Positions 152-25,257 are shown, counted from the whole stretch's first letter. The stretch: DNA of 48,422 nt, filler included, from Hydrolagus affinis (GCA_012026655.1; 3 parts of 3 records of this genome joined end to end with filler, not necessarily neighbours in it), one strand, 5' to 3'. Notes: generated from the letters alone by a model not told the origin. Program-made: numbers and translations.

Positions 152-195
152 GCTCCCATAAAAAAATGAATGGATCGCACGGTTCTGGAGAACAG
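152..195 (+). CDS. Gene A (inhibitory Ig-like receptor, 5' part outside the window): first visible cytoplasmic exon, SHKKMNGSHGSGEQ
   Basis: ttttag acceptor and CAG|gtaac donor; 44 nt, phase 1 to phase 0, in frame with the downstream exons. Confidence 0.65.
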
Positions 196-484
196 GTAAC
201 TTTATATAATTTATCTTTGTGACTTTGCAAGCAGAGATTGATGGAATATACAGCGATTGTTACTCATAAATGTTATAACATTTCAAATCATTTTCCTATG
301 ATGATTTATCAATCCTCTTCGTAACTTGCGCAAAAATATTAAGCACCACACATAATATATTGCAGTTGGTTAGCAGTGTATATGATGAACTATAAGTATT
401 GTAAAATGTTTCAAATATTTTAGAACAGACAGCTGAAATTCGCTTGTTCATCACAGCATTACATTTAGGCAGTAATATGGATTC

Positions 485-775
485 CTGTAGTTCTATGGAT
501 AGAGCACTTGCCCTGCAAGTGAGAGACCTGGGTTCAATTCCTGGCTGAGCAAAATGTTGGGCAAGTATTTTTTATTCTGCATGTCCCAGTTTACCTAGCA
601 CTACGGAGGAAAGTTAGTCGATTGTCAGATCGCTTTTCTATCGATACAAATCCTTAAAAAAAAATTCAATAATTTGATCTTCAACACAGTCAGTTCACAG
701 TATATTCTGTGAAGCCCTTTGAGATGTCTAGAAAACGATAAACGTACAATATCAATTACAAGGATTTTTATTTTG
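485..775 (+). mobile_element. tRNA-derived SINE copy
   Basis: tRNA-like head (TAG..CTATGGATAGAGC...GGTTCAATTCC) followed by the body/tail shared with many other copies in the window. Confidence 0.7.
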
Positions 776-825
776 TGTATTAAACATAATGAACCAATCA
801 TGGAATTACGAGTTGTATTTTACAG

Positions 826-909
826 TTTGTGCGGGGAGCAGTCGATGCATTGGATTTGACAAGTGCCCAGCAAAGGACTAATTATCACGAAAGGACAGCA
901 TACACCCAG
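826..909 (+). CDS. Gene A cytoplasmic exon, FVRGAVDALDLTSAQQRTNYHERTAYTQ
   Basis: ttttacag acceptor and CAG|gtaaga donor; 84 nt, phase 0-0, open frame. Confidence 0.75.
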
Positions 910-1445
910 GTAAGAAACATTGAATTTAGATATTATTCCTTTACATCCTAAATCATATTTGGAGTGGAAAATAGAATGAAACTCCAGTTACTTTAATATT
1001 ATTTCTGTACTTCACCCTCCTCAAACTGTCTAATTCTAGTTGGCTGACTGAATGGTAGACCATGTAATTGGTAGAGTTACACAGATCCTTCACTACTTAA
1101 TCATTCTTAATGTTAATCTTAGAGTGTAAGTACAGCAAATCATTCAACTGTACAACCATTACCAATGAGCGATATATTTTCTCAGAAGCATAGCTTTGGA
1201 AATTTAGCAATTGCCTACTAAATGAGTTCCCTCTTCTCTACAAGCCTGGTGGAAATTTATAATAGCTCCTCTTAATCGTATCGCTATATGAAAAGGAATT
1301 ACTAACCTGTAGTTTTTTAAAAAAAATAAACAACCAAGATACAGGAAACGCAATGTTGGAAATTCTGATTGCACTTATTTGAGAAATTTATGAAGTCTGA
1401 CAACATAATTAAATTATTTACATTTCCAAACATTTCTTTTTCCAG

Positions 1446-1553
1446 CCAAAGGGAGCAAACGATAACAAGCCGACATATGCTTCTTTGAATTTCTCTGGCT
1501 CAAAGAAAACAGGAAAGGCTAAACGTACCCATGAGAATGCAGAATATGCTGAG
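1446..1553 (+). CDS. Gene A cytoplasmic exon with PTYASL (ITIM-like) and AEYAE(V) motifs; read-through stop at 1574
   Basis: Polypyrimidine tract plus ccag acceptor, GAG|gtaaga donor; 108 nt; PKGANDNKPTYASLNFSGSKKTGKAKRTHENAEYAE. Confidence 0.8.
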
Positions 1554-2211
1554 GTAAGAGTGATGTGGACCTAAGTGTCAAGAAATGCTACAATACTAGG
1601 TGCCAAAGTTGATCAGAATGTCCTCCCAAAGTGAAAGGTGCTCTAGAAATGTGATTTTGTTATTGTTGTTGTTGTTGATGATGTTGTTGTTGTTGTTGAT
1701 TATTGCTTGATATTGAACATGCTCCCTGCCATATATATTGAGTTTATGTATGGGTACGTCAGTTATGTTGGAGTCTCGCCATCATCTACAGTTATTTGCA
1801 ACAATTTATTAACTGCTGATTTTTCATTCAACTGAAACAATTGCATGGTTTATTTGTCTAAGCCACTTAATATTTGAAAACTGTTTTAATTAACAAACTT
1901 AGTTGCTATCAACATCTCCATTATAGCAGCATGCAACCTCCAGAATGGTAAAAGACAACGTAGATGGACATTGGTCATTTTTCCTCTACCATTTCCTATG
2001 TTCCCATGTTAAATGTAGTATATTGTACCAATGTAATAACTTGTCTTTACCCGAATGATACATTAATCACACGTTTCATAAAAAATATAGCTGACATATA
2101 GCTAGAACAAAGACTGCTAATGTCAACTTGTAAGTAGTATAAATATTTGGCAGAGTTGAATAAGTGATTATAACAAACACCTAACAGTATTCAAAATCAT
2201 TGTCTTTACAG

Positions 2212-2340
2212 GTTAAACAAGGGGCAAACAAGCTGACTTATGCTGCTCTGGATTTGGGGGGCTCAACAAAAATGGGAAAGCCTAAATTCAACAAGAATAC
2301 AGAATATGCCACGGTACAGATGAAAACTACAAAGGCGTAG
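2212..2340 (+). CDS. Gene A terminal coding exon with ITIM LTYAAL and ITSM TEYATV
   Basis: tctttacag acceptor; VKQGANKLTYAALDLGGSTKMGKPKFNKNTEYATVQMKTTKA then TAG. Confidence 0.85.
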   Translation, partial: VKQGANKLTYAALDLGGSTKMGKPKFNKNTEYATVQMKTTKA

Positions 2341-3869
2341 CACAGGTCACCAACAGGGAATCGGGAAACATATACTATAGAGGCATCTGTGTCCTTTGTT
2401 GCTACCCTGTTAGTATTTCTCAAGCACAACTGTGGCAATTTATGATTTTATTTAATTTAGCGATTTGTTGCAAGAAACAAGATGGTTAAATCTATAACTG
2501 TAATTGCTTTCTTAATTTTTTTTTATACTTTAGCAGTGGTTTTGCCCTCTACACATTCCACCTAATATGACACTGCCTCCTTGCTACTGACTCCTCTCAG
2601 TAAATACTAGCCTCCATCGTGTAGACCAGCTACGTAAAAATTAAGAGAGCACTGAGTCATTGTGTCTCACTCTCAACCTTCAAAACCTACCTTAACATTT
2701 AATGTTTTACCACTCAATAGGAACCTTCACTTTGTTCCTCATTTATGAATTAAAAAAACCCAAATTATGAAGTTTTGAATAGTGGTGTAAATAGTTTTTA
2801 TATCATTCTAATTAAGAACAGTTATGAAACATAAATTGCATTGATCCTGATTTGATTTGATTACAAAAATGTAATTTTGTTGTTGTTGATCCTCATTTAC
2901 TGATTCTGTCTCTTTGGTATTAATGAAGTAACACTTGATGTGCGTTGTCATACAGTGATTAAGAATACGTGGTACCCTTCATCTACCGCTGTAAGAAGAT
3001 TAGCTTGTGGATGTTCAAACTGATCAAGTATTTTCATCAAAATCTACCTAGTGGGAAGCAGCAAAATTTTTGACTGCATTGATATTTTTGTATTATAAAG
3101 TAATTTTTAGATTGTTATATCAAAAGTGTTCAGCTCTCAAAATCAACAGTGTATCCCGTATATGAATTATTATGAACTATTATTTAACAGTAAAATGGTT
3201 GTGGACATTGTATGGTGAGTGGGTGTAGATAGCTATTATCTATACTAACATAACAACTGATATGCTCTACAAGACCAATCTCTTTCTGTAAATTTTTAAT
3301 AATAATAACGATAATTAATCCTTGCATTTGATATAGCGCTTTTCACATCTTATCAACATCTCAAAGTGCTTCACAGAATGTACTGTAAAGTGAATTGACT
3401 GTATATTTGTGAATGTGTCTTACTCCACTATTACTAATCCTGGAATTATGGTGGGTTCAATTTGAATTTGCAATGTCTGTTAATTTGTCCTCTATTCCTT
3501 CATAATCAAAATACAGATCTAAATTCTAATTACAATTTCTGGATTTCTTTTTTGAAATGGGATACGCACATCTTATTTCTTCATCAGTTACACATAGTAG
3601 CGTTATTTATTTAGGCTCTTATCCACATTCAGTGTCAAAATAAAATCATTAACATGAAAACATATTGAACAGTATTGTATGCTTAGAGACAGGTACATGG
3701 GACTACCTCACAAATAGCATTCATTGTTCCAAGATCAAGGATTTGAGGAAGAAAGCATGAGAGATAGTAATAAAAGGCTTGACATACAACAGCAACCTTC
3801 CTTTACATAGTGTCCTTCTGCAAACTTTAAGAGTGCTTCAGACAGCAATACGATGCGGAGGAAGGGAAC

Positions 3870-5300
3870 AGGTGACCTTAAGCATGGTTTAAGGTGAGAC
3901 TTAACCATGAAACGAAGGGTCGATGGGGCTTGGGAAGGGATAGGCTGGGATAATTACAGGAGATAGGTGCATAATGACTGAAGGCAAGACAACCGGTAAT
4001 GGTTCAGAGTTTGCAGGATCACATGTCTGAGTAATCCAATGGAAATGGCTATCAAAGTTACCGAGTGTCATCGGTGTTTGGGACAGATAATTGTTTAATG
4101 TGGGGTTTGGTGTATTAGTCAGCATGTGGGTGGTGGAGTTTGGATCAGATGCATTCTGTGATTATGAAATCTGGGAAGCCAGCAAAGAACACATTGGAAA
4201 ATTTAAAACAATACAACACAGATTTACCATTATACAGTCCATTTCATGTTGGGAAGATGACCTGAAGTGCTCGAAAGATTTGTTTGGTACCCGAGTTGTG
4301 AGTGGAAGTGAGGCAGAGGGAAAGGTGAAAGAAGGTAATTAACATGTCTTGAGAAGGATCTTGAAAGAGGTGAGGGAAGGAGTGAGTCAGAGCGACTTCA
4401 TGATTGAGTTCCACAGAGTGGACACAGATAGGCTGAAAATCAGATTGCTAGTCTTTGCTTGGTAGAGAGGTCATGAAGCGGGACAGAGCCTACTGAGCAA
4501 AGGGAATGGCAAGGATGGTAAAGTTGGAGATGTGGCAAAATGAATGTGATTAGCATTAGGTATGGTGGGAACTATAGTAAAAGTGTGGGAAATGCTTTCA
4601 GCAACATTTCATATGAGATAGGAGCAGGGGCAGGCAAAGCGACTGCGGTAACAAAGGACAGTTTTGGCCAAGGAACTAATTTATAGAATGGAGGGAAGCT
4701 GAGACTTGAACCAGCATGTTATTGGTTTCATGAGCTTCAGCGTGAGGAGGTTTAAGGAGATCATAACTGAAACTCAAGTGTCTTTGGTCATAAATGGCTT
4801 CCATAAATACCTTCAGGAAGATGATGCTTCAAACCAGCCTACAAGTCACAGTGGATTCTGGTATCTAGAAAAGTAGATTATGATATCATCCATATGCATG
4901 AAGAAGTTATTTATATGTCTGTGGATTACTTCGCTAAGAAGAAGCATGCAAATGAGAAAAAGAAGCGGGCCAAGGATGGAGATCTGAGGTGCTCTGCAGG
5001 TGTCAATGCAACAGTTGAAAGAAAAACAATTGGATAAAGTCACTTAGAAACCTTAAGACTGCGGGTTCATAGAGTTTGTTGAGGAGGAAAGGCAATCAAG
5101 AAGTGGACTAGTCCACTGTGTCAAAAGGTAGAGAAGGACGTTGGCAGACTTTGTCATAGAGAGAGAAACAACATCAACAAAATTACATTTATACAGCACC
5201 TTTCACATTGGCAAAGTGGTTGATTGGTGACTACGTGGACATTATCTTAGTGTGGTGGTCAGGGTAAAAACTGAGTTGGAGTGGTCCATCTGTTGTGGGC
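3870..5300 (-). mobile_element. Degenerate L2-type LINE fragment (endonuclease/RT remnants)
   Basis: Minus-strand ORF pieces LGNFDSHF (endonuclease-like) and LGPLLFLICM...MDDIIIYF (decayed RT core); boundaries approximate. Confidence 0.6.
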
Positions 5301-7269
5301 ACTGTGTGATTACAAACCAGATATTCAGTTGACATTAGCTCTTTCATGCTCCAAAACTCATTTATTGACATTCTTTTCCACAAGCTCCTAAAAATCTGCT
5401 CTCAAAACATGCTATATACAGTCAAAGACAGTGATCCAGGACAAATAACAACAAAATCAGCAACAAAATTACATTGATAGATCGCCTTTCACGTCAGGAT
5501 CAGAAAAGTAATTGAAAATGTACTGGCATACAGTGCTGGATTAAACTCCATGGTGGTTCAGGGCAATGATAGTTTGGGGGCCTACTTACATGTTGAATTT
5601 TTTTCTTCTATTATTTTACCACCACAGTGATGCCAAACACTCTATTGTTAATTTACCTTTGTTATTCCAGTTCTGTCTTTTCAAATATGATATACAAAGC
5701 TCAATCAAAGTTTCAACAATCAAAACCATATCAAGTTCAGCGCAAACTGGCAGTACTAGTTCTAACATCATAACTTAGTGATGTTAAGGGTAAAATTACG
5801 ATTTCACATTAGAATAGCTGTTAAATCAGTTTCTTCCAACTCTTCTTAGCCAAAAAGTCTTCATTTATATCATTGATAATAACAATAATCCCTTCAAATA
5901 ACATTTATAATAATTTGGTCACTGAATCCATGAGTGTTATCATGGAGGCATATCAACAACAACAACAGCTAAAATTACTAATGTAGATGTTGGGAGGACA
6001 TGCTAAGGCTTATATCAAATACAAGGTTTATTATTATTGTTATTGAAATCCAGCTGCAAAGCTAGTCAAACTCAAATGATATTAATATCATAGCAGATCA
6101 CCAGGGCCAATAGACAATTGTAGAAATGTTTGCCAAACATTTGGTGGAAATTTAACATTTTTTACGGAAAGACGGTGAGACAGTCGCAGAGACAGAGACA
6201 CTAACATACAGAGAGAAACACATCCACATGCTGAGATAGATACATATAGACAGAGGAGAGAGAGATACTAGCCCAGAGCAATCTCAATGGGGTCAAAGAA
6301 GGGTCTCTGCATGGGGCTGCGGAAAATCATCAGCGAGCGAGGCCATTCCAATACCCACTGTGCTGCGCATGCCCAGGGACTTTTCTATTGGCCCTGCCAT
6401 CACTCATTTGGGGGGACGGGGGACGTCAACATCAGTGCCCTGGGCAGCAACCCCTAAAGCCCCCGTGATAATCTGTGCAAAAAGATATTAGATAGACAAT
6501 ATTTTGGGATATAATAATAATATAATAAATGTACATATAGTAATATTTTGAGACATGTCATATAGTAAATGTAGTATGCTTGGAAGAACAAGGCAACTTT
6601 AAATCTCAAGATCCCAAAGCATTCCACTATGTTGTAGACTCATCTATAGAATTAATTGCGATCAACATAAATACGTAAGAAATGTTAGATGTTAAAAGAA
6701 CAAGGTCACCTTCAACCTTCTAGATGGTCACATTCACATATGCCCCAAACTGCATATGTACTATATCCTATAGTGGGATATAAGAAAACTATGTCATTTG
6801 TGTTTGAAAGATCAACACTTCCTGCTTTCACTGTCTTCCTAGGGAGCCTGTTTTACAGGTTCATATTCACTCACTGAAATAGTGTTTGCATAGATTCATT
6901 CTAAATTTACTCCCCTTCAATCACAAGCCACGTCCTCTGGTTTTACTATTCTGGACAACTTTTAACAGCTTATCATGACCTATATTGTCTAGCCCCTTTA
7001 TAATCTGAAAGACAGCAATCGTATTGCCTCTCAATCTTTCTTTTCCGGTGTGAACATGACCAAATATCAAATTAGCCCTGATTCATATTGACATGGAATA
7101 CAACTAATAGAGCTTGGATTGAGAGCAGTTCCCCTGGATAACTACAGGAACAATCTCATCATGTTACATTCAGATACAATTTCAACTTTGCTGCCAAGTT
7201 AAGATAAGTGACAGTAATCAACTTTGATGTGGACAACTATTTTCACAAATCCCCACGATACACTGGGAA

Positions 7270-7306
7270 CCAATCATCTGACCTGACAGAGGCTGGAAGT
7301 CAGTCA
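7270..7306 (+). promoter_or_regulatory. Candidate promoter of gene B (CCAAT box plus ETS-type GGAAGT)
   Basis: CCAAT at 7270 and GGAAGTCAGTC at 7295; the same arrangement is conserved upstream of gene C. Confidence 0.45.
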
Positions 7307-7380
7307 CCACGCCTTACATGTAAAATCTTAAACAACTATAACTACTTACTATAGCCAACGATTATTAGTCTCGATACCTA

Positions 7381-7441
7381 ATGAGAATGTCAGCGAGTTT
7401 TGTGTTTCAGCATGCATGTCTGTTAGGATTGGTTTCCACAG
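7381..7441 (+). CDS. Gene B leader exon, MRMSASFVFQHACLLGLVST
   Basis: ATG to ACAG|gtgtgt, phase 1, 61 nt; a homologous 61-nt exon is present in gene C. Confidence 0.8.
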
Positions 7442-7603
7442 GTGTGTATTCTTTTTTTAATCTAATTTGACAAAAATGGACATAGATTATATCATTTTAT
7501 ATAATTTTCTATTGATAGAGCAAGTCTGTATATTGCTCTGTGCATTATTTTGTCTTTTGCTGTAATTCTCTTTCTAATTTACGTTTGAATTTATTTCTGA
7601 TAG

Positions 7604-7924
7604 TTGTTGACGGTACAATGATCAGAGTGACCCAAATCCCAGATCATATGGAGGCAATTAGAGGCACTAACGTTACTTTCCACTGCATGTTTCCTGACGC
7701 TCAATCCAACTCACGTGTAAAAGTTTACTGGTTGAAAGAGGGAGAGAATAACTACCTGCATACAAGGGAGGATACAAGACAAGTGTTTGAGTTTGAAAGT
7801 GAACAAAAAAGCTTCTTTAAACTCCAAAATGTGAATCTCCAGGACTCTGGTGTGTATCATTGTGTTCTCGTGCTTCAGGGGAAAATAGCGGCCAGTGGAC
7901 CTGGATCACGTCTGGATGTATGGG
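7604..7924 (+). CDS. Gene B V-set (VJ-type) Ig exon, NKp30/SIRP-like
   Basis: VTQ..G.NVTFHC, VYW, DSGVYHC and J-like GPGSRLDV; phase 1-1, 321 nt; no RSS seen. Confidence 0.9.
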
Positions 7925-9132
7925 GTAGGTATAGTTTCAGTGAAGAACGGCAATATTCCAAATTAGATTTTGAGCCAAAAACTCTGACCATGTGTGAAGG
8001 ACATTTTCATTATTTTTAGAATATGAAACAGGTGTTTCAAAATGTTATCCTTTAAAACGAATCTTCCTGGGGCCAGGTGGGGTCTGCTTGGAGATGACTC
8101 CCGAATTATTCACTTGGCAATGGAATGTCTGAATCATATCAACCTTCTGCAATGGCCTCAGTGGGCCAGGTCTTGACCCAGGCAGGGCTGCAGTATTCTG
8201 GGGGCACTTCTATACAGCCCAGCCAGCCTGACTCATCATTTGGATGAGCAGAGAAAGCCTGGTATAATGGGCAGGCTGATAACATTGAACCGCTGTTAAC
8301 TCTGCAGGCAATGTAGCCTTCTTGGGTACGGTTATGTCACATAGCTCATGCACTCATGTGCAATAGCAAATCTTAATTTTATTATTCTTATCGTATTCTT
8401 ACATGTTTGAAAAGTACATGCTACAGTGTTGGCCGGGAAGGTTGCATTACCAGCAGTGCCTTTATTCGGATAAGATCAACAGCCATCCCGCCATTTGAGA
8501 TTAACAATAAAAAAAATTACACGTTTGAAAAGAGAAGTGTTTCTTGGTGTGCTGATGAACACATCCCTGATTGTATCCCCAGAAAAAAAATGCAAATGCA
8601 AACAATTTTATGATTTGACGGATTTCAACAAAACAAGGACCTATATCGGATGCAATGGTGTTCAAAAATAATTTAATTAAGGTTTTGACAATTTCAAACC
8701 ACAAATTTTTATTAAATAAACTAAATACATTTAGTCAAATACATTTTCAGTAATGAACTATTTCTTCATTTTACTGAGTAGGAATACAACAGAGTATATC
8801 AGTGTTGGCTATATTGCTGTTGTGACTATGTATATGGCTCGAACATTATTTTTCCCTCCAGAATTTCTATCGATAACTATAAAAAACTTTTCCGTATTGC
8901 TCCATTCCAGGTAAGAGAACAGAATTAGAAGATCAAATTTGTATTAACGGGGAGATACATCGGAAGTATGAAAAATGATGTTTTTAGTGGAGATTGAGAA
9001 ATTCTATGACAATTGTGCTAGCTTTACATGGTGTATTTGTTTACTTTTTGGAGAAACTGTAGTGACCATAAAGTTTAATCTCCACCAACTGAGTGTAACT
9101 TCTGTAATTCTGCTGTACTGTTCGTTCTACAG

Positions 9133-9444
9133 TTCCTCCAACTCCACTGAAAATCTTCTCCAACGTTACTAAAGCAGGATCGCCAGTGCCTCTGACTCTT
9201 GTGTGTGAAACCACTGCATTTTATCCAGAGAATCTTAACCTCACTTGGTATAAAAATGGCACCAAAATTACATCTCGAATAGATATCTCTAAACAGCAGA
9301 ATGCAGAGGGATTGTATGAAGCTTCAAGCTTTGTGGAAGAGAACAAGCCTGTCCAAAGTGGGATTGTTTATATCTGTCAGGTTTCTCACATCAGCCTTCA
9401 GATTCCAGAAATTGTCAACTACACAGTTCAGTTCTCCAACACAG
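9133..9444 (+). CDS. Gene B C1-set Ig exon
   Basis: VPPTP...LVCETTAFYPENLNLTWYKNG...YICQVSH; tctacag acceptor and ACAG|gtagga donor; 312 nt. Confidence 0.92.
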
Positions 9445-9659
9445 GTAGGATGCCCACAATCTTACTGTCAATTAATTTTTTCACGTTTTTTTAGTACCTG
9501 ATTATATTTCCTGCATGTTTATGAGTTGAAGCAAATCCCATATTTTCTTTCTGTTGTATTGGTGAGTTTGGATTTGACTGCTCATTTTCACTGATATCAG
9601 AATGACATCTAGAGATCACTCCGTGGATGCACCCAGCCGTACGTTTATAGTAATGATAA

Positions 9660-10148
9660 TAATTAATTTTAATACCACTTTAACATTTCCCTCTTTGACA
9701 GAAGTTATGATCAAGCCCCAGCTTCCAAGCCCCCAACTGTGGTATGTCCCATAGACTACTCTGCATAAAGAGTGCAATATATAGTTTATATGCATATCTG
9801 TGAAAATTGTAATTGTGTGTCCTTGGTTTTGATATAACACTTGGTAATGTTATTGATGCATCTCAAAATGCTTCACATAATGTATATGAAATTGTATTGA
9901 TTGTGTATATTGACATTAATTTCACCTAAATTGAACATTGCGACCCATGCTCATAGTTTTTCCGGTAGAAAGATAGTACGAGAAGTCAGCTACAATTACA
10001 ATTTTCACAGATATGCATATCAACTATATATTGCACTCTTTATGCAGAGTAGTCTACGGGACATACCACAGTTGGGGGCTTGGAAGCTGGGGCTTGATCA
10101 TAACTTCTGTCAAAGAGGGAAATGTTAAAGTGGTATTCAAATTAATTA
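9660..10148. repeat. Long inverted repeat (157-bp arms at 9660-9816 and 9992-10148, 175-bp spacer) in the gene B intron
   Basis: The two arms are near-perfect reverse complements read directly from the sequence. Confidence 0.9.
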
Positions 10149-11051
10149 AGAAGGGGGCCAGGTAGAGGGATTTCCAAAGATTAGGACGGGAAACTCGACC
10201 AAGGATTACAGTTGTTGGACTTCCCCAGGCTTGCTTGTGACATCTGAGTAATGGGGACGACAGAGGAACGAGGTTAGAGAGGTTGGGAGCTGTTCGAGTG
10301 TGAACGTGAGACTGAGGGACCTGAAATCTATTCCTTCGAAGCCATGAAGAGAGTCCACGATCATCAGCGTGCTGATTTTAACAATGTGATTTTAACCAGT
10401 GATCCAGATTTGGATGAATTGGACCTTGTGAATGGTGGAACTGGGTGAGCCAGTAAGGAGTCTGTTTGCAGTCAATGGTGAGATGCAAAAGATGTGAAAA
10501 AGTTTATTAGTGGCATCTGGTGTAAGTAAAATACAAGTCGTCTTTCTCTCTTCCAAATAATTAACATTCAGCAAACTTCCCTACTCCCCACACCTCTGTT
10601 TACCTAGCAATAGGTAGGAACCCAGTTGTTATTCGATTGGTGGTTTGCTTTTCCTGAAGTAATAAAGCCTAAAAAAAATCATATGTTATTCACTCAATGC
10701 ACGATTGTTTGTGGGAGACTGCTGTGCGCAATTGGCTGTTGCCGGTTGCTCCCAAAATATACAGTCAATTCACTTTACGGTGCATTCTGTGAGATGTCTC
10801 AAACTGTGATAACAACAAAATTAGATTTTGCTCCCACCTTGCTCATTGGGAGAACGTCCAGGTGCAAGTGCAAGGATGACATTGACAATTATTATTATTA
10901 TTAATAAAAACCTACCTGATATTTAATCTCCATTAGAGTTCAGTGATATTTGCCTTGCTATGTCGTGACTTGTGTCACCCCTCAGTCTAAACCAATTTCA
11001 AATGAACCCTACATATGCACACTGCCTCATGGTTCTGTCTTTACTTCATAG

Positions 11052-11167
11052 TTTCTAACAGAGAACGCAATATTATAATTTTCCGGTATGTATGGAGTGT
11101 GTTGGTAATACTTCTCTTGACCATCATCGTTGTGGACCATTTCAGAATTCATCCCATTCAAAGGTAA
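11052..11167 (+). CDS. Gene B TM exon with intramembrane Arg (IIIFRYVWSVLVILLLTIIVVDHF); read-through stop, or AG|gt donor after 11163
   Basis: cttcatag acceptor, phase 1, hydrophobic stretch; homologue in gene C. Confidence 0.88.
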
Positions 11168-12162
11168 AATATGTATTGCTATTCGAGACTGCTGTTGCTT
11201 TAATATTAAATTGTTTGAGATGCGGTACAAGAAAACAGAAATATACTTGTATATCATTGTTTAAATATAATAACAATTTTTGCATTTGATATAGAATTGT
11301 ATCATGTCATTGAAACATCTCAAAGTGTTTCACTAATATATTGTATAGTAAATTGACTGTATATTTTGTGGTCAAAATGTGGCAGTGAATTGAACTCAGC
11401 AGTGCACTACAAGCATTTGTGCATTGAGTCACCACTTTTTAAGTAATATTACCCACTACAAGGGATCTGCCAATTGACTTACAACCAGGTTCCAACTTGC
11501 TGTGAGGCAAATAGAAGCATGTGGAGTAACAACATTTGTATAGTGCCTTTCACATCTGAAGAACGTCCTAAGGCACTGAACAGTCAGTGTTTCAGACCCG
11601 AGCTGGGATCAGGATCAGGATTGGTGAGGGTGGAGTGTGGAACTTAAAGGAGGCTAGGGAGGGAGAGATGCAGAGAGATTGTGGAATGGAATTCCATAGG
11701 TTAGGGGACATGAGCTAAGGCTGGTGGGATTGGTGTATCGGGGGACATGGAGCAGGCTGGAGCCTGCTCAGTGGAGGGAGTGGACAGATTGGAAGGGGAT
11801 GAGGAGGTCGCGGAAGTAAGGTGCAAAGCCATGGAGGGGTTTAAAGGTGACTTTAAAACTTTAAAGGAAACTTGCCCAAGGTTACTCTCCACCAAAAGTA
11901 AAATATGCAGATGTGGTGGTGGAATAAATCTTTCTGTCCTACAATTTGAGGAAATTTGAAAATGAATTTCTTTATAATTGATTTTAAATAACATTAATAT
12001 GATGGTGCAACAAATTGATACTTTTAGATTTGGTTGAAGAACTTGTGGCAAATTATGCAAAAACCTACATTGCAAACATATTTTGCAAACAGACTTCACA
12101 TAAAAGACCACTTTTATGTAAACAAAATACATGGTGTTTCATGAGATTTTGCATTTGTAAAG

Positions 12163-12208
12163 TCATGAATGTAGTTTTGAAAAAAAATTCCAACATTTCA
12201 AGAGTTAA
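12163..12208 (+). CDS. Probable gene B terminal exon (SHECSFEKKFQHFKS*), with 3' UTR running to AATAAA at 13067
   Basis: Acceptor position conserved with gene C (24635); phase 2 matches the TM-exon donor; polyA signal conserved in both paralogues. Confidence 0.5.
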
Positions 12209-12299
12209 ACTTAATTTGCGTCAAATCTCAAAACCGTGTATTTCTGCTTAAATACTGTGGAATAATTTCTGACAATGAGAAAAACATGTGATATTACTA

Positions 12300-13024
12300 C
12301 AGTAGAAGCCCTTTATCCGTGACTCGATGCACCAATACTTCCATATAACCGGCACGCCCCCCAAAAAGTCCTCATTCGATAAACCAGAACTTATCTGGAA
12401 TAATAACAGTGAAGCATTTGTGATTGCATAAATAATAACATAACAGCAGAATACTGCATTGGCACTCACCGTCAAAACCACTATCCCGCGCCCCCCAACC
12501 CCGCTGGTAGATACTGCGCTTGTATCCATGATGCTGCGGTTGAGGTTTACAGTCCAGCAACCCCCCACAAAATGGAGCATGCCAAGCGAGCAAAAAAAAT
12601 TTAGTGTATATGACTTTAAAGTCATACTAGCGGCAAGACAATAATGCTAGACGATAACCCACATTGTCGCGCAGGTGCAGTATTTCGGTTTGCCACTAGT
12701 AGAGTCTAGGGCTTCAGCTTGCAGGTAGTAAAGTGGCGCTGCCGTTTTTTTCACCCGCCTGGCGCCCCCCATTCAAAAAAGAATCGCGGGACTGCAAACC
12801 CCAACCAGCAAAGGTGAGAAGCGCAGGAGAGCAGCCCCAACAACAAGCACCAACACAACATTCTGTCACTATCTGCCATTACTTAGTCTGGTGTGTATGG
12901 TGTGTTAAAAGAACTTTAATTTTCTTAGGGTAGGTTTTCGGCTGCGGGCCGCCCGAATATACGGCAGGCGCTTTAATTGGCATTGGCCAGGTCCCGCGGG
13001 TGCCGGATACACGGGCTTCTACTG
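12300..13024. mobile_element. Non-autonomous Tc1/mariner-superfamily (Tigger/pogo-like) DNA transposon, 725 bp
   Basis: TA|CAGTAGAAGCCC...GGGCTTCTACTG|TA with ~20-bp TIRs and a TA duplication; empty TA site in the paralogue at 24776. Confidence 0.9.
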
Positions 13025-13783
13025 TATATTGAAAAGTTTTTATATCAAGTACAGTATCTCGCATTCAATAAAATATTAGCTGAATGTAGGTTTGTTTCTT
13101 GGCCAATCGTTCGCACATATGTCTCTGCCTCATGGGAGCTGTACGCAACGTGTTACAAAAATATCAACCAATCATCTTTCATGTTGTCTTATTTGTATTT
13201 TACAGGTTGGAGAGGCAGGGAGGTGCCCGGGCATGAAGACTATATAATTATAAATCTAAACACCCTTATTGTTCATGGGTGTTTTTAATCAAGTTATCTT
13301 AAGTGGGTTAATCTTTATTTCCTCTGGTGGTGCCGGAAGCCTCCAAAAGATTTTGGTTTCTTTGTATCATGTTTTTATAAAAGGCAATCACCTCATCGGT
13401 TCTTTTCTGGTGAACTGCAATACTGACACTATATGTCAAAGTTTTGGGTAACTGTCACATTCTTCATTCTTAAGGGTAAGATTTTATGTGTTTTGATTGA
13501 TCCGTATGGCTTGCCATAACTTGCCATTGATATTGCTATCCTGCTGCCTGTCCAGATAGGATCATTCTGTCCATTAGTGCTTTGGCTTGCTGGCGTAACA
13601 GGAGGTAAGAGGAACTCACCAAGTGACGTGTTGGAATAATAGAGACAGAGTAACTTGCAGCAGTAACTTGCAGAGTAACTGGTGGATGCCGGCTACCATA
13701 TAGAGCACTGTGTTTATTAAACCCATGTTATTACTCTGTTATTATCTCTCAAACACAACTTATAGTGTGTATATATTATATAT

Positions 13784-14584
13784 CAACATCCAAGGCTGTA
13801 CTCTCCACCTCACAAAGCCAGTCAGGAACCTCGGCATCACATTCGACCATAAACTCTCCTTCCTCCCCCACATCCGTGCCTTATCCGGCACCGCTTATTT
13901 CCACCTGCGCAACATTGCCAGGCTCCACAACTATCTCACCCCCCACGCTGCCGAAACACTTGTGCATGCGTACATCACCTCACGGCTGGACTACGGAAAC
14001 TCTCTCCTCGTCAGCCTCGCCAGCTCCTCCATTCACAGGCTGCAGGTCATCCAAAACTCTGCAGCCCGTGTACTATCCCGCACCCGTCTCCGTGACCACA
14101 TAACCCCCACCCTCGCCTGTCTCCACTGGCTCCCCATCCCCCAGAGGATCAAGTTCAAGATCCTTGTCCTCATTTTCAAAGCCTTACATGGCCTTGCCCC
14201 GCCCTATCTATCCGATCTACTCTCCCCCTATAAGCCCACCCGGACCCTCCGTTCAGCAGAACTTTGTTTGCTCCTAGCCCCCCACCCGAACCGCCCCACC
14301 ATCGGAGGCCGGGCCTTCAGCTTCTCCGCTCCCACCCTATGGAATTCCATCCCCCAATCCCTCCGCCTTGTTTCTTCCCTTTCCTCTTTCAAGGCCAATT
14401 TGAAGACTTTCCTTTTCGACCGTGCCTTTTGTTCCCCCCCTAAATTTTCGACCTCCCCTACGTGTTTCACCCCTTCCCGAACACTCCCCTCCCAGCTCGG
14501 GTCACACGCCTCCTGTGCAGCGCCTTGGGACGTCCTCCCGACGTGAAAGGCGCCCTATAAGTCTAATTTGTTGTTGTTGTTGTT
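13784..14584 (+). mobile_element. Young 5'-truncated L2 LINE (RT C-terminus plus 3' UTR ending in (TTG)n)
   Basis: Stop-free ORF containing VRNLGITFD..LSF..HI, SRLDYGNSLL and LHWLPI..RIKFK; absent at the paralogous site (~25670). Confidence 0.92.
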
Positions 14585-15835
14585 ATATGTATATTGGTCA
14601 TACAAACAAATGAATCAAATATATAATCAGTCTAAAATGCTGCAAAGTTCAATTGTGATATGTAAATCATATTTTCTGTCTTATTCATCCTGCCTCTTCA
14701 ATAAAATTGCAGAAGGAACACAAGTGTTAGCTTGAAATTATTTGAATAAAATTCTGCACAATTCATCTACTCCAGTGAAAAAGATAAACCATGGACGGTC
14801 TATCGGTCACGTACCTGCTAAAATGGACGCAACAGGATATAACTAATCGCTCCTTTGTGTTATTTATAACAGCGACAATAAAAAAAGTTACAACGTCTCG
14901 CTCCTCACATTAAATATAGAGTGTGTGGTGAGCATCTGTTGCTACTACACAACTATTATTGCAACCAACACATTTGCTCAAACTTCAACTGCTAGCTCAT
15001 TATGGCCATGTTCAAGTGTCCTGGTTCTTTCACAGAAGCCTGGACTGTCCAATTAATACATAGCAACCAGTAAATTTCCCTACCCTGTTCATTCACCCAT
15101 GCTGTTTTCTAAGTATATTTTTCTTGAGAGTGGGTTACTGATATGTCCGATACTGTCGTGAAATGTTTTCTAAATAGATTACAATGGCAAGTCATTTCCT
15201 CTTGACTATGCACAAACAATCTTTTGACAGATTCCTGTCTAACATTAATGCTGGTGCAAAATTGGTGATATATAATCATGTGATTTGTTCCAAAATGTTT
15301 CTGGTTTATCGTTTCTATCATTTAGCAGTGTAAATTGCATGAGATTAAACTCTATCCTGTTGTCAGCTTTGATGATTCACATCAAAACTGCTTATGAATT
15401 ATTTCAGGCAGGAAAAAATATGTTGTATAAATGGTTATTTTGTAGTGAACCGATATGTTTTGACCAAAGATTGAATATTAGAAGGATATAGCTCTCGTGA
15501 AATTATCCTTGGCGGCTGCTGTCAGTTAAAACAACCCTGACTCCCAAACAATTCAATTGTGGTTCAGTAAATAAAACTTTGAGTGTTGCTTACAAATACA
15601 ATTTACCTTTCACCTTTGTTGCCAGCAACACATGCGGTTCTGGTCACTCCTTAAGTAGGTCGGGATGTTGGGACATCCTCCTGATGTGAAAGATGTTCTT
15701 TAAATGTAATTGTGTTGTTGTTGTAAGTTGACAACTGCCTTTGCAACCCACTCTCAAAATAAAAAAAAAGGCCAATCTAGATCTTTAATAATAATCCTTG
15801 CATTTGATGCAGCGCTTTTCACATCTTCTAGATGT

Positions 15836-18241: not shown

Positions 18242-18302
18242 ATGAAAATGTTGACAAATTATGTGTTTCAGTGTGTATATTGGATCGGGATTATTTCCAC
18301 AG
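18242..18302 (+). CDS. Gene C leader exon, MKMLTNYVFQCVYWIGIIST
   Basis: ATG to ACAG|gtgcgt, phase 1, 61 nt. Confidence 0.8.
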
Positions 18303-18448: not shown

Positions 18449-18778
18449 CTGTTGACAGTACAATACGGTACAGTACCAGAGTGATCCAACTCCCCGACCG
18501 TGTGGAGGCAATCAGAGGCACTAGCGTTACCTTCCACTGCATTTTCCCTGATGCTGAACACAACTCGCGTTCAGAAGTGTACTGGATGAAGCAGGAAGAC
18601 AATGAATACCAGCATACGAGGCCGGATAAAAGAAAAGTGTTTGGGTTCGACAGTAAACAAACAAGCTTCTTTAAGCTTCTAAATGTGAATCTCCAGGATG
18701 CTGGTGTGTATCAGTGTTCCCTCGTGATTCAGGGAAAATTAGTGGCCACTGGACCTGGATCACATCTGGAAGTATGGG
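18449..18778 (+). CDS. Gene C V-set (VJ-type) Ig exon
   Basis: TFHC, VYW, DAGVYQC and GPGSHLEV; 330 nt, phase 1-1; about two-thirds identical to the gene B V domain by eye. Confidence 0.9.
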
Positions 18779-20522: not shown

Positions 20523-20834
20523 TTCCTCCAACTCCACTGAAGATTTTCTCCAACGTTCCTAAAATAGGTTCACCAGAGCCTCTGACTCTTGTGTGTGAAA
20601 CCACTGCATTTTATCCAGAGAATCTTAACCTCACTTGGTATAAAAATGGCATCAAAATTACATCTGGAATAAATATCACTGAACAGCAGAATGCAGAGGG
20701 ATTGAATGAAATTTCAAGTTTTGTGGAAGAGAACAAGCCTGTCCAAAGTGGGGTTGTTTATACCTGTAAGGTTTCTCACATTAGCCTTCAGATTCCAGAA
20801 GTTGCCAACTACACAGTTCAGATTTCTGAAGCAG
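20523..20834 (+). CDS. Gene C first C1-set exon
   Basis: 312 nt, open frame, splice sites identical to gene B C1. Confidence 0.9.
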
Positions 20835-22193
20835 GTAGGATGCCAACAATCTTACTCTCAATTAATGTTAATTGTTTCTCATGCAAATATTTTCTTATTT
20901 ACAAATAATATTTCCTGCGTGTTTATGAAGTAATATAAATCGCATATTTTACAAGTACAGCTAATATTTCCAAACCCATTATAAACTCTATGCTCATGTC
21001 TATCTATTAAACATTGTATAATACAGTCCCATATATTTATAATGTCCTCATATTACAAAAATATAGGATAATATTATACAATGTTTATAGATAGATTCAA
21101 TCCCTCCATGGCCTTGTCCTGACTATCTCTGCTACCTCCTAACCCCCGAGCAACCTATCCGTTCCCTCCGCTCAGTGGGCTCTGACCTGCTCCATATCCC
21201 TCGACCCACCCACCCCACCATTGGTCGTCGATGCTTCAGCCAGTCTGCCATCAACCTCTGGAATTCCATCCCACAATTGCTCCACCTTGCCCCTCCCTTA
21301 GCTTCCTCCAAGTCCCAACTTAAAACCCTCCCCTTCCACGGTGTGATCGTTCCACCTCAACTTCTCATTGTGTTTGAAAAGCAAGTGCTGGAGAATTGGC
21401 CAGGAATGTCAGTGAGTGCTGCATTACCAAATATGCCTTCAGATACGATCAAGATCCAGTCTGCTGGATGAGATTGACTTTTAAAAAATGACACTTTTCA
21501 ATAAGAGAAGAGTTTCTCAGAGTGTATACTCTAAGAAATAAACATATTTGTGGTTCCACTGGTTCAAAAAAACAGTGATGTGCATTTGAGAATTTTGAAA
21601 TAAAAAGCTCCAATATCATATACAATTTTATTAAGATTTAGACAATATTAAAATTTTATGAAATACAATTTCAGTAAAATTAGATACACTTAGTTAAATA
21701 CAATGTCAATGATTAACTTTTTTAAACCTTACTGATGAGGAAAACAATAGAGCATGTCACCATTGGTTACTTTTCCATTGTAACCAAGTTTAAACTTCAC
21801 ACTGTAACTATAAAGCAATCACGCTTTTTTTTATTGCTCCAGTTCCATGTAACTGGAAACAAAATGAAAAGCTCATATATGTATAAATGGAGATGCAATC
21901 GGAATTGTGGAACACATCTACAATTTTGATGACAATTTGTGCCAGCTTTTCATGCTCTATTTATTTACTTTTTGGGAGAAATGTAGTAATAAAGAATCTT
22001 TCACATGACAACTTTTATAATTCTTAACAACGGCAAACAAATCAAAGTTGGAACTAAAGATTTGTTTAAATCTGAAGCAATAAACCAGAATCAAAATAGT
22101 ATAGTGAAATGAATAGTATATAAACCATAATAAAGTTTAATCTCCACCAATTGAATGTAAGTGTGTAATTCTGCTGTACTATTTATTCTACAG

Positions 22194-22505
22194 TTCCTCC
22201 AACTCCACTGAAGATTTTCTCCAACGTTCCTAAAATAGGATCCCCAGTGCCCCGGACTCTCGTGTGTGAAATCACTGCATTTTATCCAGAGAATCTTAAC
22301 CTCACTTGGTATAAAAATGGCATCAAAATTACATCTGGAATAAATATCACTAAACAGCGGAATGCAGAGGGATTATATGAAGCTTCAAGCTTTGTGGAAG
22401 AGAACAAGACTGTCCAAAGTGGGGTTGTTTATACCTGTAAGGTTTCTCACATCAGCCTTCAGATTCCAGAAATTGCCAACTACACAGTTCAGTTTTTTGT
22501 TGCAG
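22194..22505 (+). CDS. Gene C second C1-set exon (internal duplicate)
   Basis: 312 nt, open frame, about 12 aa differences from the first C1. Confidence 0.9.
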
Positions 22506-22774
22506 GTAGGATGCCAACAATCTGACTGCAAATTAATATTAGTTGTTTCTCATGGGGTGGGATCAGAGGTTCGGTAAAAGAGGGAAATGCAAGAATGCAA
22601 ATGCAAGGATTATTGTTATTATTAATAACCGGCCTGACATTCAATCTCCATTAGAGTTCAATGATGTTCTCCATGGCACGTTCTGACTTTTGCCACCCCA
22701 CAGTCTAAACCAATTAATTTCAGCTGAATGCCACCATGTTCACACAGCCTCATGTTTCTGTCTTTACTTCACAG

Positions 22775-22890
22775 TTTCTAATGGAATACCCTACATTGTA
22801 ATTTTCCGATTTACATGGAGCGTTTTGGTAATAATACTCCTCACCGTCATTGTTGTGGACCATTTCAGAATTAATCCCATTCAAAGGTAA
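22775..22890 (+). CDS. Gene C TM exon with Arg (YIVIFRFTWSVLVIILLTVIVVDHF); read-through stop, or donor after 22886
   Basis: cttcacag acceptor, hydrophobic stretch, homologous to gene B. Confidence 0.88.
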
Positions 22891-23053
22891 AGTATTTTAA
22901 TACTAAAATTTTTGTGGTGCGAACAGGAAAACTGAAATATACTTATACGTCATTGTTTAAATATAATAATAACTATCTTTGCATTTGATATAGCTTTGCA
23001 TCATATTGTTGAGATATCTTAAAGTGCTTCACATAATATATAAAGCAAACTGA

Positions 23054-23840
23054 CTGTATTTTATTTTGTGGTCGAAATGTGGCAGTCAATTGAACACAGT
23101 AGTGCACTACAAGCAGTCGTGCGTTGAGTGACCATTGTTTAGGTAATATTATCCACTAAAAGGGATCTGCTAATTGACTAAAATCTGGGTTGCAACTTGC
23201 TGTGAAGCAAATAGGTGTGTGGAGAAACAACAACAAAATTATCTTCGTATATGTAGCGCCTTTCGTATTGAGAGGATGACTCACGGTGCTGGACAGTCAG
23301 TTTTTCAAACCCGAGCTGGGGGTCAGGAATGGGGAGGTGGAGGGAAGGGAGGGGAAGCAGAGTGAATGGCACTGTCAAAGAGGAGGATGTTGATGTGCGG
23401 CTTGGAGGAGGCTAGGGAGGAATGAGGCAGAGGGATTGCGGGATGGAATTCCAATGGCTGGGGCAGAGTGGCTGAAGGATCGCCCGCTGATGGTGCGACG
23501 AGTGAGTCAATATGTTGATGTGGTGGTGGAATAAATCCTTCTGTCATACAACTTGACCAAATTTGACAAATGAAATTCTTTATAATTCATTTTAAATAAC
23601 ATGAATAAGGTGGTGCAACAAATTGATGCTTTCACATTCGGTTGAAGAACTTGTGGCAAATTATGCAAAAACCTACATTGCAAATGTATTTTGCAAACAT
23701 TCAACTCAGATTTTAGTCAATTAGCGGATCCCTTTTAGTAGGTAATGCTACCTAAACAATGGTCACTGAACGCACGACTGCTTGTAGTGCACTACTGTGT
23801 TCAATTGACTGCCACATTTCGACCACAAAATAAAATACAG
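23054..23840. repeat. Inverted duplication (~139 bp at 23054-23192 copied in reverse at 23702-23840)
   Basis: Reverse-complement match; gene B has only the forward copy (~11350-11490). Confidence 0.85.
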
Positions 23841-24634
23841 ACATAAGAGACCACTTTTATGTAACAAAAAATCATAATTTGTGGCATCAATAATCTAATT
23901 AATTATTCAGCAAAATTCATAATTATATTCTGTTACTATAGATCGTGTAAGAAAAAATGTGAATAGAATGGTGTAACAAATTGATGCTTTCAGATTTGGG
24001 TGAAAGATGGGTGGCACATTATATACAAGAAGCTCCATTGCAAACAGAAATTTCAAACAGACGTCATATAAAAGACCACTTTTATGTCAATAGTCATAAT
24101 TTGTAAAAACAATAAGGTAATTAATAAGTCAGCAAAATTCATGATTTTATTCCATTGTTATAGATCAAGAAAGCAAAAAGTGGCGAGAAATCTCTGACTG
24201 CAGTACAACTGAAGAATCGAGGGAATGTACATCACAGAAGCAAACAATATATGAAAAGAAAGATACAAAACTCAAATTCACCAGTATATTATTGTATTGT
24301 TACAGTTATTGCTGTAGCCATATTTAATAATTTCCTTGAATTTGTTACACTGTAATAACAATCCTTGCATTTGTTATAGCACTTTTCATGTCCTCTAGAT
24401 GTCTGAAAGCGCTTCACAGAATATACTGTCAAGTGAATTGACTGTATATTTGTAGGCAAAACGCAGTGCCAATTGCACACAATAATACATTATTATATTG
24501 AAGTGTTTCAAAGGAAATTACTGAGAAATGCACTGACTGTATAGTAGGCAAACACTGGCATCAATTTCTGCAAAGTAGAATTTTACCAACAGCCATGAAA
24601 TTGTGGTAATTGTTGCGATTTTGCATTTTTACAG

Positions 24635-24644
24635 TCGTGAATAG
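24635..24644 (+). CDS. Probable gene C terminal exon (SRE*), with 3' UTR running to AATAAA at 24821
   Basis: tttttacag acceptor, phase 2 match, homologous to 12163. Confidence 0.5.
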
Positions 24645-25257
24645 AAATGTAGCTTTACAAAAAAAAATCCCATGTTTGAAGTGATAAACTCAAATTATGT
24701 GAAATCTCTGTACTGTGTATTTCTGCCTAAATACTGAGGAATAATTTTTAACATGAGAAAAATTTGTGATATTACTATTTTGAAAATTAGTTTTTATACC
24801 AAGTATCTTGAATTGCATTCAATAAAATATTAGCTGAATATATGTCGGTTTATTTCATGACCAAATAGGCATGCAGAGATATGTGCCTCATACCAGGAGC
24901 TGTTACAAAAATACCAATTAATCCTGTTTCACATTTTTCTGTTTGTATTTTATATGATTATCTTACACTCGTCTGTCCAACAACATCCACAACTTACTGT
25001 TCAAAGTGCGGCCATTCATGTTGCAATGGAGGGTATGAGGGACATGTAGGAACCAAAGCCACTCAATTAGAGGCAGCAATAGTTAGTTGGGGATTAAACA
25101 GGTTGGAGAGGTAGTGAGGTGCTAGGGCATGAAGACAATATAATTATAAACCTGCCTAGCAGCTAAACACCTTTAGTGTTCATTGTCATTTTTAATCCAA
25201 TGTGTTAGTTTAAGCGGGTTAAGCTTTTTGGTCAATTCAATCCACGATTGTTTAATA

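Follow-up and report, generated by a model that had tools for sequence, protein, structure and literature searches.

The locus raises the question of whether a chimaera possesses a paired activating/inhibitory receptor system built from non-rearranging VJ-C1 chains. We analyzed a 48,422-nucleotide stretch of DNA from Hydrolagus affinis (GCA_012026655.1; three parts joined with filler and referred to here as the window), for which such a system had been proposed from the sequence alone. The proposal stood: two tail types on one kind of ectodomain, lack of a recombination signal, and coding constraint all speak for it. We consider it probable that the window covers part of a gene cluster belonging to a family of non-rearranging V(J)-C1 cell-surface receptors in cartilaginous fish, paired into inhibitory and activating members in the manner of SIRP-alpha and SIRP-beta.

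As predicted, three genes lie on the same strand: the tail of gene A, and genes B and C, for which complete gene models were obtained (Table 1). Gene B consists of leader, V, C1, and transmembrane (TM) exons in an open frame of 269 aa, while gene C has the order leader-V-C1-C1-TM and an open frame of 376 aa; in gene C, the second C1 exon arose from the first by tandem duplication, and the two share 88% aa and 93% nt identity. All exon junctions of B and C are canonical AG/GT and in phase 1. The features that the original prediction had ascribed to these two genes were all recovered, namely, a V domain whose G strand is J-like and reads GPGS.L.V, C1-set domains (one in B and two in C, by Pfam and the structure model), and a TM Arg near the N-terminal end followed by almost no tail. 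The TM segments are IIIFRYVWSVLVILLLTIIVVDH in B and IVIFRFTWSVLVIILLTVIVVDH in C, each with 8 further residues before a TAA stop codon. In both, the Arg stands in the outer third of the membrane segment, 17 residues ahead of an inner D-H pair (R-x16-DH), and the cytoplasmic tail is ~10 residues long. The stalks in the gene models contain no cysteine. The predicted locus had extended to 24826; between 22890 and that position, nothing relevant was found.

Table 1. Positions of the exons and of the duplication unit in the window
Feature	Position	Strand	Evidence and remarks
Gene A cytoplasmic mini-exon (..SHKKMNGSHGSGEQ)	152..195	+	Phase 1 in, phase 0 out; AG/GT sites, sole open frame
Gene A cytoplasmic exon, 28 aa, end ..ERTAYTQ	826..909	+	AG/GT sites, phase 0/0; aligned to C. 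milii homologue
Gene A cytoplasmic exon, motifs PTYASL and AEYAE(V)	1446..1553	+	Splice sites, frame
Gene A last coding exon, LTYAAL (ITIM) and TEYATV (ITSM), stop TAG 2338-2340	2212..2340	+	Splice sites, frame
Duplication unit with gene B, collinear with 18107-26445 (gene C)	7247..15555	+	Self-BLAST
Gene B leader exon (MRMSASFVFQHACLLGLVST), phase-1 donor	7381..7441	+	Conserved in gene C; like leader of C. milii P0002
Gene B V exon, in-exon J-like G strand SGPGSRLDV	7604..7924	+	Pfam V-set E 6.7e-10; splice sites; AlphaFold pLDDT 91.6
Gene B C1-set exon	9133..9444	+	Pfam C1-set E 2.8e-12; splice sites; structure model and Foldseek
Gene B stalk/TM/short-tail exon	11052..11167	+	Arg in outer TM part, Asp-His at inner end, stop TAA
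Gene C leader exon	18242..18302	+	Found with gene model; conserved with gene B
Gene C V exon, G strand TGPGSHLEV	18449..18778	+	Pfam V-set E 8.2e-11; splice sites
Gene C first C1-set exon	20523..20834	+	Pfam C1-set E 5.6e-12; splice sites
Gene C second C1-set exon	22194..22505	+	Pfam C1-set E 1.4e-14
Gene C stalk/TM/short-tail exon, R-x16-DH module as in gene B	22775..22890	+	TM sequence, splice sites

Pfam assigned both V exons to the V-set and the three C1 exons to the C1-set (PF07654). The Foldseek neighbors of the V model (pLDDT 91.6) were TCR V-beta at the top, CD79b, IgNAR V, NKp30, and SIRP-alpha V; the match to SIRP-alpha V (E ~5e-8) was not better than those to TCR, CD79b, NKp30, or IgNAR V. 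The C1 model (pLDDT 86.8) lay closest to the membrane-proximal alpha2/beta2 domains of MHC class II (TM score ~0.83, rmsd ~1.5 A). Together, the Pfam profile and the structure model support the conclusion that these are genuine C1-set domains with the seven-strand topology of that class. V and the J-like strand, with its G-x-G bulge (GPG), share one exon, and a search at the B and C V exons found no heptamer-spacer-nonamer; the V exons are germline joined and non-rearranging. Rearranging TCR or Ig chains were ruled out by the lack of a V/J split and of recombination signals. TCR chains do share with B and C the V(J)-C1-TM order, a basic TM residue, a tail of only a few residues, and the V fold noted above, but the window genes lack the connecting-peptide cysteine and have sister genes with ITIM tails.

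Self-BLAST aligned the regions around B and C at 70 to 80% identity in noncoding sequence and 82 to 91% in exons, and the two genes are old tandem duplicates. The possibility that they are decaying, unexpressed pseudogene copies of a functional family member was considered. Neither has an exact match among annotated proteins, the region is repeat rich, and dN/dS values of 0.41 to 0.76 across the V, C1, and TM exons (the leader, with its 20 codons, gave 0.94) indicate moderate constraint only, not strong purifying selection. On the other hand, nine of nine exons are open, with all splice sites and both start codons intact. Divergence is 15.6% in the exons, where 810 nt contain a single in-frame indel, compared to 23.9% in the flanking sequence, where 1,359 nt contain 26 indels, which argues that both genes have been constrained since the duplication; the probability that B and C would be free of stop codons under neutrality is 0.0012. 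We therefore regard decay as very unlikely.

Gene A is represented in the window by its cytoplasmic exons only. One of the four, 826 to 909, had been overlooked in the original prediction; it is five codons shorter than its counterpart in the Callorhinchus milii homologue, and the tyrosine of the first ITIM is among the missing codons. The expectation that gene A ends in ITIM/ITSM motifs was confirmed, with a qualification. The tail has six tyrosines, in PTYASL, AEYAEV, LTYAAL, TEYATV, and two further contexts, and two of the six match the strict consensus: LTYAAL is a canonical ITIM, and TEYATV is an ITSM, while PTYASL and AEYAEV fall outside it. Whether gene A belongs with B and C had been left open, since its ectodomain lies beyond the window. 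The C. milii protein XP_007902823.1 has a V-C1-TM structure and a tail that aligns with the four gene A exons one by one, the mini-exon corresponding to SHKEINGSHRSGEQ, and its locus is collinear with the window at 74 to 79%. Because a gene with a gene A-type tail carries the same V-C1 ectodomain there, homology and collinearity support the assignment of gene A to the same family. A search with the gene A-type tail found no match beyond its own cluster.

Sequence comparisons place B and C in a large multigene family of chimaeras, sharks, and rays. There were 782 C1 relatives at E<=0.001, and V-C1-TM members with 45 to 65% identity were found in Callorhinchus, Heterodontus, Scyliorhinus, Carcharodon, Heptranchias, Chiloscyllium, Amblyraja, Hemitrygon, and Hypanus. 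The 10-kb flanks at three C. milii loci contained family members only. One C1 domain is usual in the family; where a skate member has a second, it arose, like that of gene C, through recent exon duplication. Two TM/tail types occur on one ectodomain type in the chimaera and in six shark species: an uncharged TM followed by a long multi-tyrosine tail, and an R-x16-[D/E]-H TM followed by a short tail. As in paired receptors generally, closely related ectodomains thus come in two forms, one with an ITIM tail and one with a charged TM and short tail, and the genes are clustered. In the ectodomain tree, B and C grouped with C. milii inhibitory members, apart from the labeled shark activating member (P0086, Scyliorhinus); this clustering by lineage with inhibitory members is typical of paired receptors. 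The family is already present in public annotation under inconsistent automatic names (SIRP-alpha-like, SIRP-beta-1-like, tapasin-related-like, NCR3LG1-like, and MHC class II beta-like), many members being SIRP-alpha-like or SIRP-beta-1-like; such names are best-hit labels, not tests.

In the paired system that we favor, gene A would be the inhibitory arm, with its V-C1-TM exons expected just left of the window; once phosphorylated, its tyrosine-rich tail could recruit SH2-domain phosphatases. B and C, with the same kind of ectodomain and almost no tail, would be the activating arm, and their conserved TM Arg may bind an ITAM adaptor through an aspartate in that adaptor's own TM. The Arg lies in the outer third of the membrane segment, and this position alone favors an adaptor of the FcR-gamma or CD3-zeta type over DAP12. 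Among KIR, the Arg-bearing activating forms are reported to couple to FCER1G rather than to DAP12 (PMC8102735). The explanation further supposes a ligand, expression, and shared ancestry with tetrapod SIRPs.

B and C could instead be short-tailed non-signaling molecules, acting as decoys or in adhesion, in the manner of SIRP-gamma, or else resembling ligands or chaperones. The breadth of the automatic names, among them tapasin-related-like, NCR3 ligand 1-like, and MHC class II beta-like, would fit this, as would the proximity of the C1 model to MHC class II and a language-model feature search in which Ig kappa-like, CD80, and tapasin-related clusters ranked at the top for an activating-type member. 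However, the spacing of R-x16-[D/E]-H is invariant across B, C, and seven proteins of six shark species, although the ectodomains have diverged, and such conservation of a TM module would be difficult to account for if it had no partner in the membrane. In the great white shark, the module occupies its own phase-1 exon. Sister genes, moreover, join the same ectodomain type to ITIM-type tails, and we consider a non-signaling role for B and C unlikely.

The relation to SIRP requires separate consideration. In both families, a non-rearranging V whose G strand is J-like precedes C1-set domain(s) and a TM, and paired members either have an inhibitory multi-tyrosine tail or combine a charged TM with hardly any tail. 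The inhibitory SIRP has four tyrosines in ITIM-type motifs that bind SHP-1/SHP-2, compared to six, two of them strict, in gene A. The charged TM residue of SIRP-beta is a mid-membrane Lys, which pairs with DAP12, whereas B and C use an outer-membrane Arg; SIRPs are V-C1-C1, whereas the family usually has one C1; and there is no specific V-domain similarity. The family may be unrelated to SIRP by descent, having branched off separately in cartilaginous fish from the antigen-receptor/MHC C1 lineage (near IgL, UrIg, or MHC class II) and converged on the same design. Consistent with this notion, C1 profile and fold searches point to Ig heavy chains, UrIg2, and MHC class II instead, the nearest non-shark sequence matches include Ig light-chain constant domains from pig and teleosts, gene C and the skate member each owe their second C1 to recent exon duplication, and the activating TM is unlike that of SIRP-beta. 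In searches of PDB with family profiles, SIRP was absent among the best 60 matches, and the V and C1 profiles gave generic Ig matches (titin and Robo; Ig heavy chains and UrIg2). Against it, a single-sequence C1 search of PDB placed SIRP-gamma and SIRP-alpha directly after shark UrIg2, as the best non-shark structures, and the feature searches favored SIRP clusters, a gene A-type protein lying nearest to those of SIRP-alpha (0.97/0.96). The alternation of TYAxL and EYAxV in the gene A-type tail, with a basic K-P-K stretch between, presumably resembles the SIRP-alpha tail as well. Independent origin is a reading to be taken seriously, if a somewhat doubtful one; the likeness to SIRP is one of architecture and signaling logic, and specific sequence or structural closeness is weak.

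Other known systems resemble the family in part. NKp30 (NCR3) has a VJ-type V domain, among the top structural matches of the V model, and, in common with the B/C type, a TM Arg that it uses for an ITAM adaptor. Its V is followed directly by stalk and TM, however, whereas B and C carry C1 exons, which sets them apart from NKp30, and NKp30 is encoded by one gene only, to which no inhibitory partner sharing its ectodomain corresponds. KIR, LILR/PIR, CHIR, and NITR families likewise place long-tailed inhibitory genes beside short-tailed TM-Arg activating genes in clusters expanded in tandem, but with C2/I-type domains instead of C1-set; NITRs are reported from bony fish. The UrIg and UrIg2 proteins of sharks are non-rearranging VJ plus C1-set. 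Nurse shark UrIg2 carries a VJ together with nine C1-type domains and assembles into disulfide-linked dimers (PMC12227049); B and C were ruled out as members by their one or two C1 domains, stalks without Cys, and predicted paired signaling tails. PRARP, of VJ type, has been classed like NKp30 as a "VJ gene" in contrast to VJ-C1 (PMC10751288), and the C1 domains of the window genes argue against membership.

SIRP, UrIg, and a few others have been discussed as non-rearranging VJ-C1 genes in a pre-RAG context (PMC2785349, PMC12227049, PMC10751288), such genes being the closest living models of the state that preceded the splitting of a V exon by the RAG transposon. The family described here is clustered and fast evolving in chimaeras, sharks, and rays, and since it has both ITIM-type and Arg-TM forms, the predicted SIRP-style paired signaling on VJ-C1 chains would have been present by the base of the jawed vertebrates. 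Among the papers searched, none was found that describes the family; given this and the existing annotation, the value of the present analysis lies in naming and characterizing it, not in a new principle. The short-tailed chains might even be more than SIRP-like innate receptors: they may be relatives, still extant, of the non-rearranging chain from which T-cell-receptor-type chains arose, and would assemble through R-x16-[D/E]-H with CD3-zeta/FcR-gamma-type modules. We think this improbable; if true, germline-joined VJ-C1 chains of the oldest jawed vertebrates would follow the principle by which antigen receptors assemble with adaptors. R-x16-[D/E]-H offers a concrete, testable TM module for adaptor pairing. 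The stop codon of the TM exon coincides with a strong donor site (AAG/GTAAA), and a downstream exon could therefore add a few C-terminal residues.

Stop-to-stop frames combined with Pfam located two V-set and three C1-set exons, all on the plus strand, in agreement with the original prediction of V domains with a J-like G strand and C1-set domains encoded on one strand; no further V or C1 exons were found elsewhere in the window. Every Ig exon is preceded by a polypyrimidine-AG, is followed by GTAGG(T/A), and is in phase 1, the common phase in Ig-superfamily genes. When the regions upstream of the tandem genes B and C were compared, a conserved leader exon came to light in each (ATG, hydrophobic core, and phase-1 donor), and a separate phase-1 exon in each encodes the stalk, transmembrane (TM) segment, and short tail. 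When joined, the exons give open frames of 269 aa for gene B (L-V-C1-TM) and 376 aa for gene C (L-V-C1-C1-TM). The V-to-C1 junction matches the one in P0002, an annotated Callorhinchus milii protein in which it reads ...RLTVRAPPTPLKIF. The G strands (SGPGSRLDV and TGPGSHLEV) lie within the V exons, and no recombination signal sequence (RSS; heptamer-spacer-nonamer) was found in the window; the V domains of B and C are germline-joined, upholding the view that these are nonrearranging VJ chains. A J-like string, FGQGTNL, was treated as a chance occurrence, since it had neither a Pfam match nor an RSS.

The TM segments of both genes carry an Arg in the outer part and an Asp-His at the end, followed by eight residues and TAA, matching the outer Arg and near-absent tail noted earlier. 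This TAA overlaps a strong donor-like sequence, AAG/GTAAA, kept in both genes. Since the equivalent donor is used in a great white shark homologue, in which nine further residues are supplied from downstream, the products of B and C might gain a few C-terminal residues by splicing. No ITIM-type exons or their remnants were found downstream of either gene.

Positions 1-26589 are AT-rich vertebrate genomic DNA (G+C, 31-48%) with abundant interspersed repeats, placed in the cartilaginous fish by protein searches. The gene B V exon is 64% identical to a C. milii protein, and the likeness continues past the exon into the intron. Among C. milii loci, the closest is L001 (GCA_018977255.1, MU249845.1:15,718,019-15,740,974), which is collinear with two segments of the window. 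Gene A, of which only tail exons lie within the window, encodes a 120-residue tail end that contains six tyrosines. Two of the motifs are canonical, LTYAAL as an ITIM and TEYATV as an ITSM, and PTYASL and AEYAEV come close to consensus. The ITIM/ITSM tail had been noted earlier, with its second exon overlooked. Each exon of this tail aligns with its counterpart in P0154 (XP_007902823.1), a C. milii protein of 392 aa in which leader, V, and C1 precede an uncharged TM and a multityrosine tail. Relative to P0154, five codons have been lost from gene A, among them that of the tyrosine of the first ITIM. The V, C1, and TM exons of P0154 lie in L001 just upstream of the point corresponding to window position 1, and farther downstream comes a gene whose V is B-like, the same order as in the window. 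Homology to P0154 and collinearity with L001 make it very probable that gene A belongs to the family and shares its ectodomain type with B and C, which answers the earlier caveat that its ectodomain falls outside the window. The C1 exon of LOC103185890 (L001 9801-10123, MU249845.1), as mapped on the newer C. milii assembly, is split into two frames with a 1-base overlap, and the current RefSeq version, XP_007902823.2, has 201 aa and begins within C1 (version.1 has 392 aa); the cause is a 1-bp error in the assembly or else a frameshift that is polymorphic or real.

Coordinates of genes, duplicated segments, and repeats in the window
Feature	Position(s)	Strand	Remarks
Gene A tail exons	152-195, 826-909, 1446-1553, 2212-2340	+	four phase-compatible exons
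(TTG)14 microsatellite	1657-1698		intron separating gene A's last two exons
Segments collinear with L001	1-5874, 7062-8211		identity 74-79%
J-like string FGQGTNL	4522-4683		
Tandem units of B and C	about 7247-15555, about 18107-26445		
190-bp AT-rich block	11902-12091, 23509-23699		AATAAA at 11923/23530
190-bp block, weaker third copy	23962-24059		
157-bp inverted repeat	9660-9816, 9992-10148		98% identity; gene B C1-to-TM intron
142-bp inverted repeat	23051-23192, 23702-23843		94% identity; downstream of gene C TM exon
280-codon open frame	13704-14543	+	
Fragments related to this frame	14179-14370, 16591-16817, 19889-20164, 21099-21289, 23274-23494		
tRNA-bearing repeat copies	3295-3411, 10660-10792, 11257-11398, 22952-23127, 24353-24481, 25247-25555		
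Rfam tRNA match	25493-25551	-	32.9 bits; within repeat

Genes B and C are old tandem duplicates. Their exons differ at 15.6% of 810 aligned bases with a single gap opening (9 nt, in frame), whereas the flanking noncoding DNA differs at 23.9% of 1359 aligned bases with 26 gap openings. At the flank rate, with substitutions alone, a 269-codon frame stayed open in 0.12% of simulations. The dN/dS values (TM, 0.41; V, 0.64; C1, 0.52-0.76) lie within the range usual for immune receptors with mixed constraint. Selection has kept both genes open. A 190-bp AT-rich block 600-750 bp 3' of the TM exons shows 90% identity between the two genes, against about 75% in the flanks, and both copies contain an AATAAA; candidate explanations are the end of a 3'UTR, a regulatory element, and a conversion-homogenized repeat.

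An exhaustive HMMER search with the gene B C1 domain returned 782 matches at E<=0.001. Those at 45-65% identity are proteins of 200-420 aa with the C1 placed after a leader and a V, and the members looked up came from a chimaera, six sharks, one skate, and two rays. Their automatic names include [quoted passage not shown] (SIRP-alpha-like), "SIRP beta-1-like," "tapasin-related-like," "NCR3 ligand 1-like," "MHC class II beta-like," and "uncharacterized." C. milii has at least six family genes, in both orientations, at 15.60-15.74 Mb of one scaffold, MU249845.1. The skate protein P0009 (Amblyraja radiata XP_032892405.1) has two nearly identical C1 domains, so exon duplication has produced the V-C1-C1 layout more than once in the family.

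Family members fall into two TM/tail classes. Class 1 has an uncharged Gly-rich TM, a K/R-rich stretch, and then 80-150 residues in which xTYAxLxL and xxEYAxV/RTVYAQ motifs recur. Class 2, represented by B and C and by proteins of Heterodontus, Scyliorhinus, two Chiloscyllium species, Carcharodon, and Heptranchias, has a TM of the form R-x16-[D/E]-H, with invariant spacing, and a short tail without the Class 1 tyrosine motifs; in one additional Heptranchias protein, Gln replaces the Arg. A tree of V+C1 ectodomains joined B and C with 100% SH-aLRT and grouped them with C. milii inhibitory members (nearest, P0154 and P0029), while P0086, the labelled activating member from Scyliorhinus, stood beside shark inhibitory members, apart from B/C. 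A TM module for activation that is old and conserved, carried by ectodomains that follow their local inhibitory partners, is the classic mark of paired-receptor families. The two tail classes on one ectodomain type, and the tree pattern, support the proposed paired innate receptor system.

A-type receptors, once tyrosine phosphorylated, would recruit SH2 phosphatases and thereby damp activation, while B/C-type receptors would share ligands with them, or bind related ones, and their signaling would pass through an ITAM adaptor held by the TM Arg. FcR-gamma and CD3-zeta carry a TM Asp close to the outer face. On the strength of this shared outer Asp, and because activating KIR with Arg are described as pairing with FCER1G and not DAP12 (PMC8102735), we favor an adaptor of the FcR-gamma/CD3-zeta type, with odds that are roughly even; DAP12 is the alternative.

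The system works like SIRP-alpha/SIRP-beta, with which it shares the V(J)-C1 architecture, and the family may belong to SIRP by descent. SIRP is an established nonrearranging VJ-C1 relative of antigen receptors (PMC2785349) and is counted among the joined-VJ genes (PMC11599192). The automatic names point toward SIRP, and a single C1 sequence of these genes searched against PDB found SIRP-gamma (E 1.3e-14) and SIRP-alpha (8.4e-14) as the best nonshark matches, after shark UrIg2. Language-model feature searches, which serve as leads only, placed a gene-A-type protein with SIRP clusters (0.97/0.96) and returned the SIRP set most commonly in the top 100 for an activating-type member. On the other side, the family V profile against PDB was dominated by multidomain Ig proteins (titin and Robo) without discriminating SIRP, the C1 profile returned Ig heavy chains and UrIg2 without singling SIRP out, and the P0154 tail (residues 256-392) had no match outside its own cluster. 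The C1 model was nearest to MHC class II domains, and the V model matched TCR V-beta, CD79b, IgNAR V, NKp30, and SIRP-alpha about equally. "SIRP"-named matches in lungfish, frog, and turtle were rejected as multi-C1 proteins without the classical SIRP tail, and pig and teleost matches as Ig light-chain constant regions. The family also differs from SIRP in having, as a rule, one C1, the second in gene C being a recent exon duplicate, and from SIRP-beta in using an outer Arg, in place of Lys, as the activating residue. Other identities were ruled out: NKp30 lacks a C1, UrIg/UrIg2 are antibody-like dimers of VJ and many C1 (PMC12227049), and a rearranging receptor would have an RSS.

Public protein sets already include the shark family under automatic names, and our search, whose coverage of subscription journals was incomplete, found no paper describing a shark SIRP-like family. 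The finding is real and well supported, and is of use to the debate on antigen-receptor origins rather than a new principle. We think it quite unlikely that the short-tailed VJ-C1-TM(Arg) chains are relatives of a pre-RAG TCR-type chain with an adaptor-assembly module.

Several repeats were also observed. Pfam gave no match for the 280-codon open frame or for the long repeat-derived ORFs; the C-terminal part of this frame (..GGRAFSFSAPTLWNSIP..) recurs as degraded copies on both strands, and the frame probably represents a retrotransposon ORF tail. The tRNA-bearing repeat, with at least six copies in the window and present in C. milii loci too, is probably a tRNA-derived SINE. The 157-bp inverted repeat, with arms about 175 bp apart, is much better kept than the duplicated DNA around it and has no counterpart at the corresponding position in gene C; it may be a recent MITE-like insertion able to form a hairpin.
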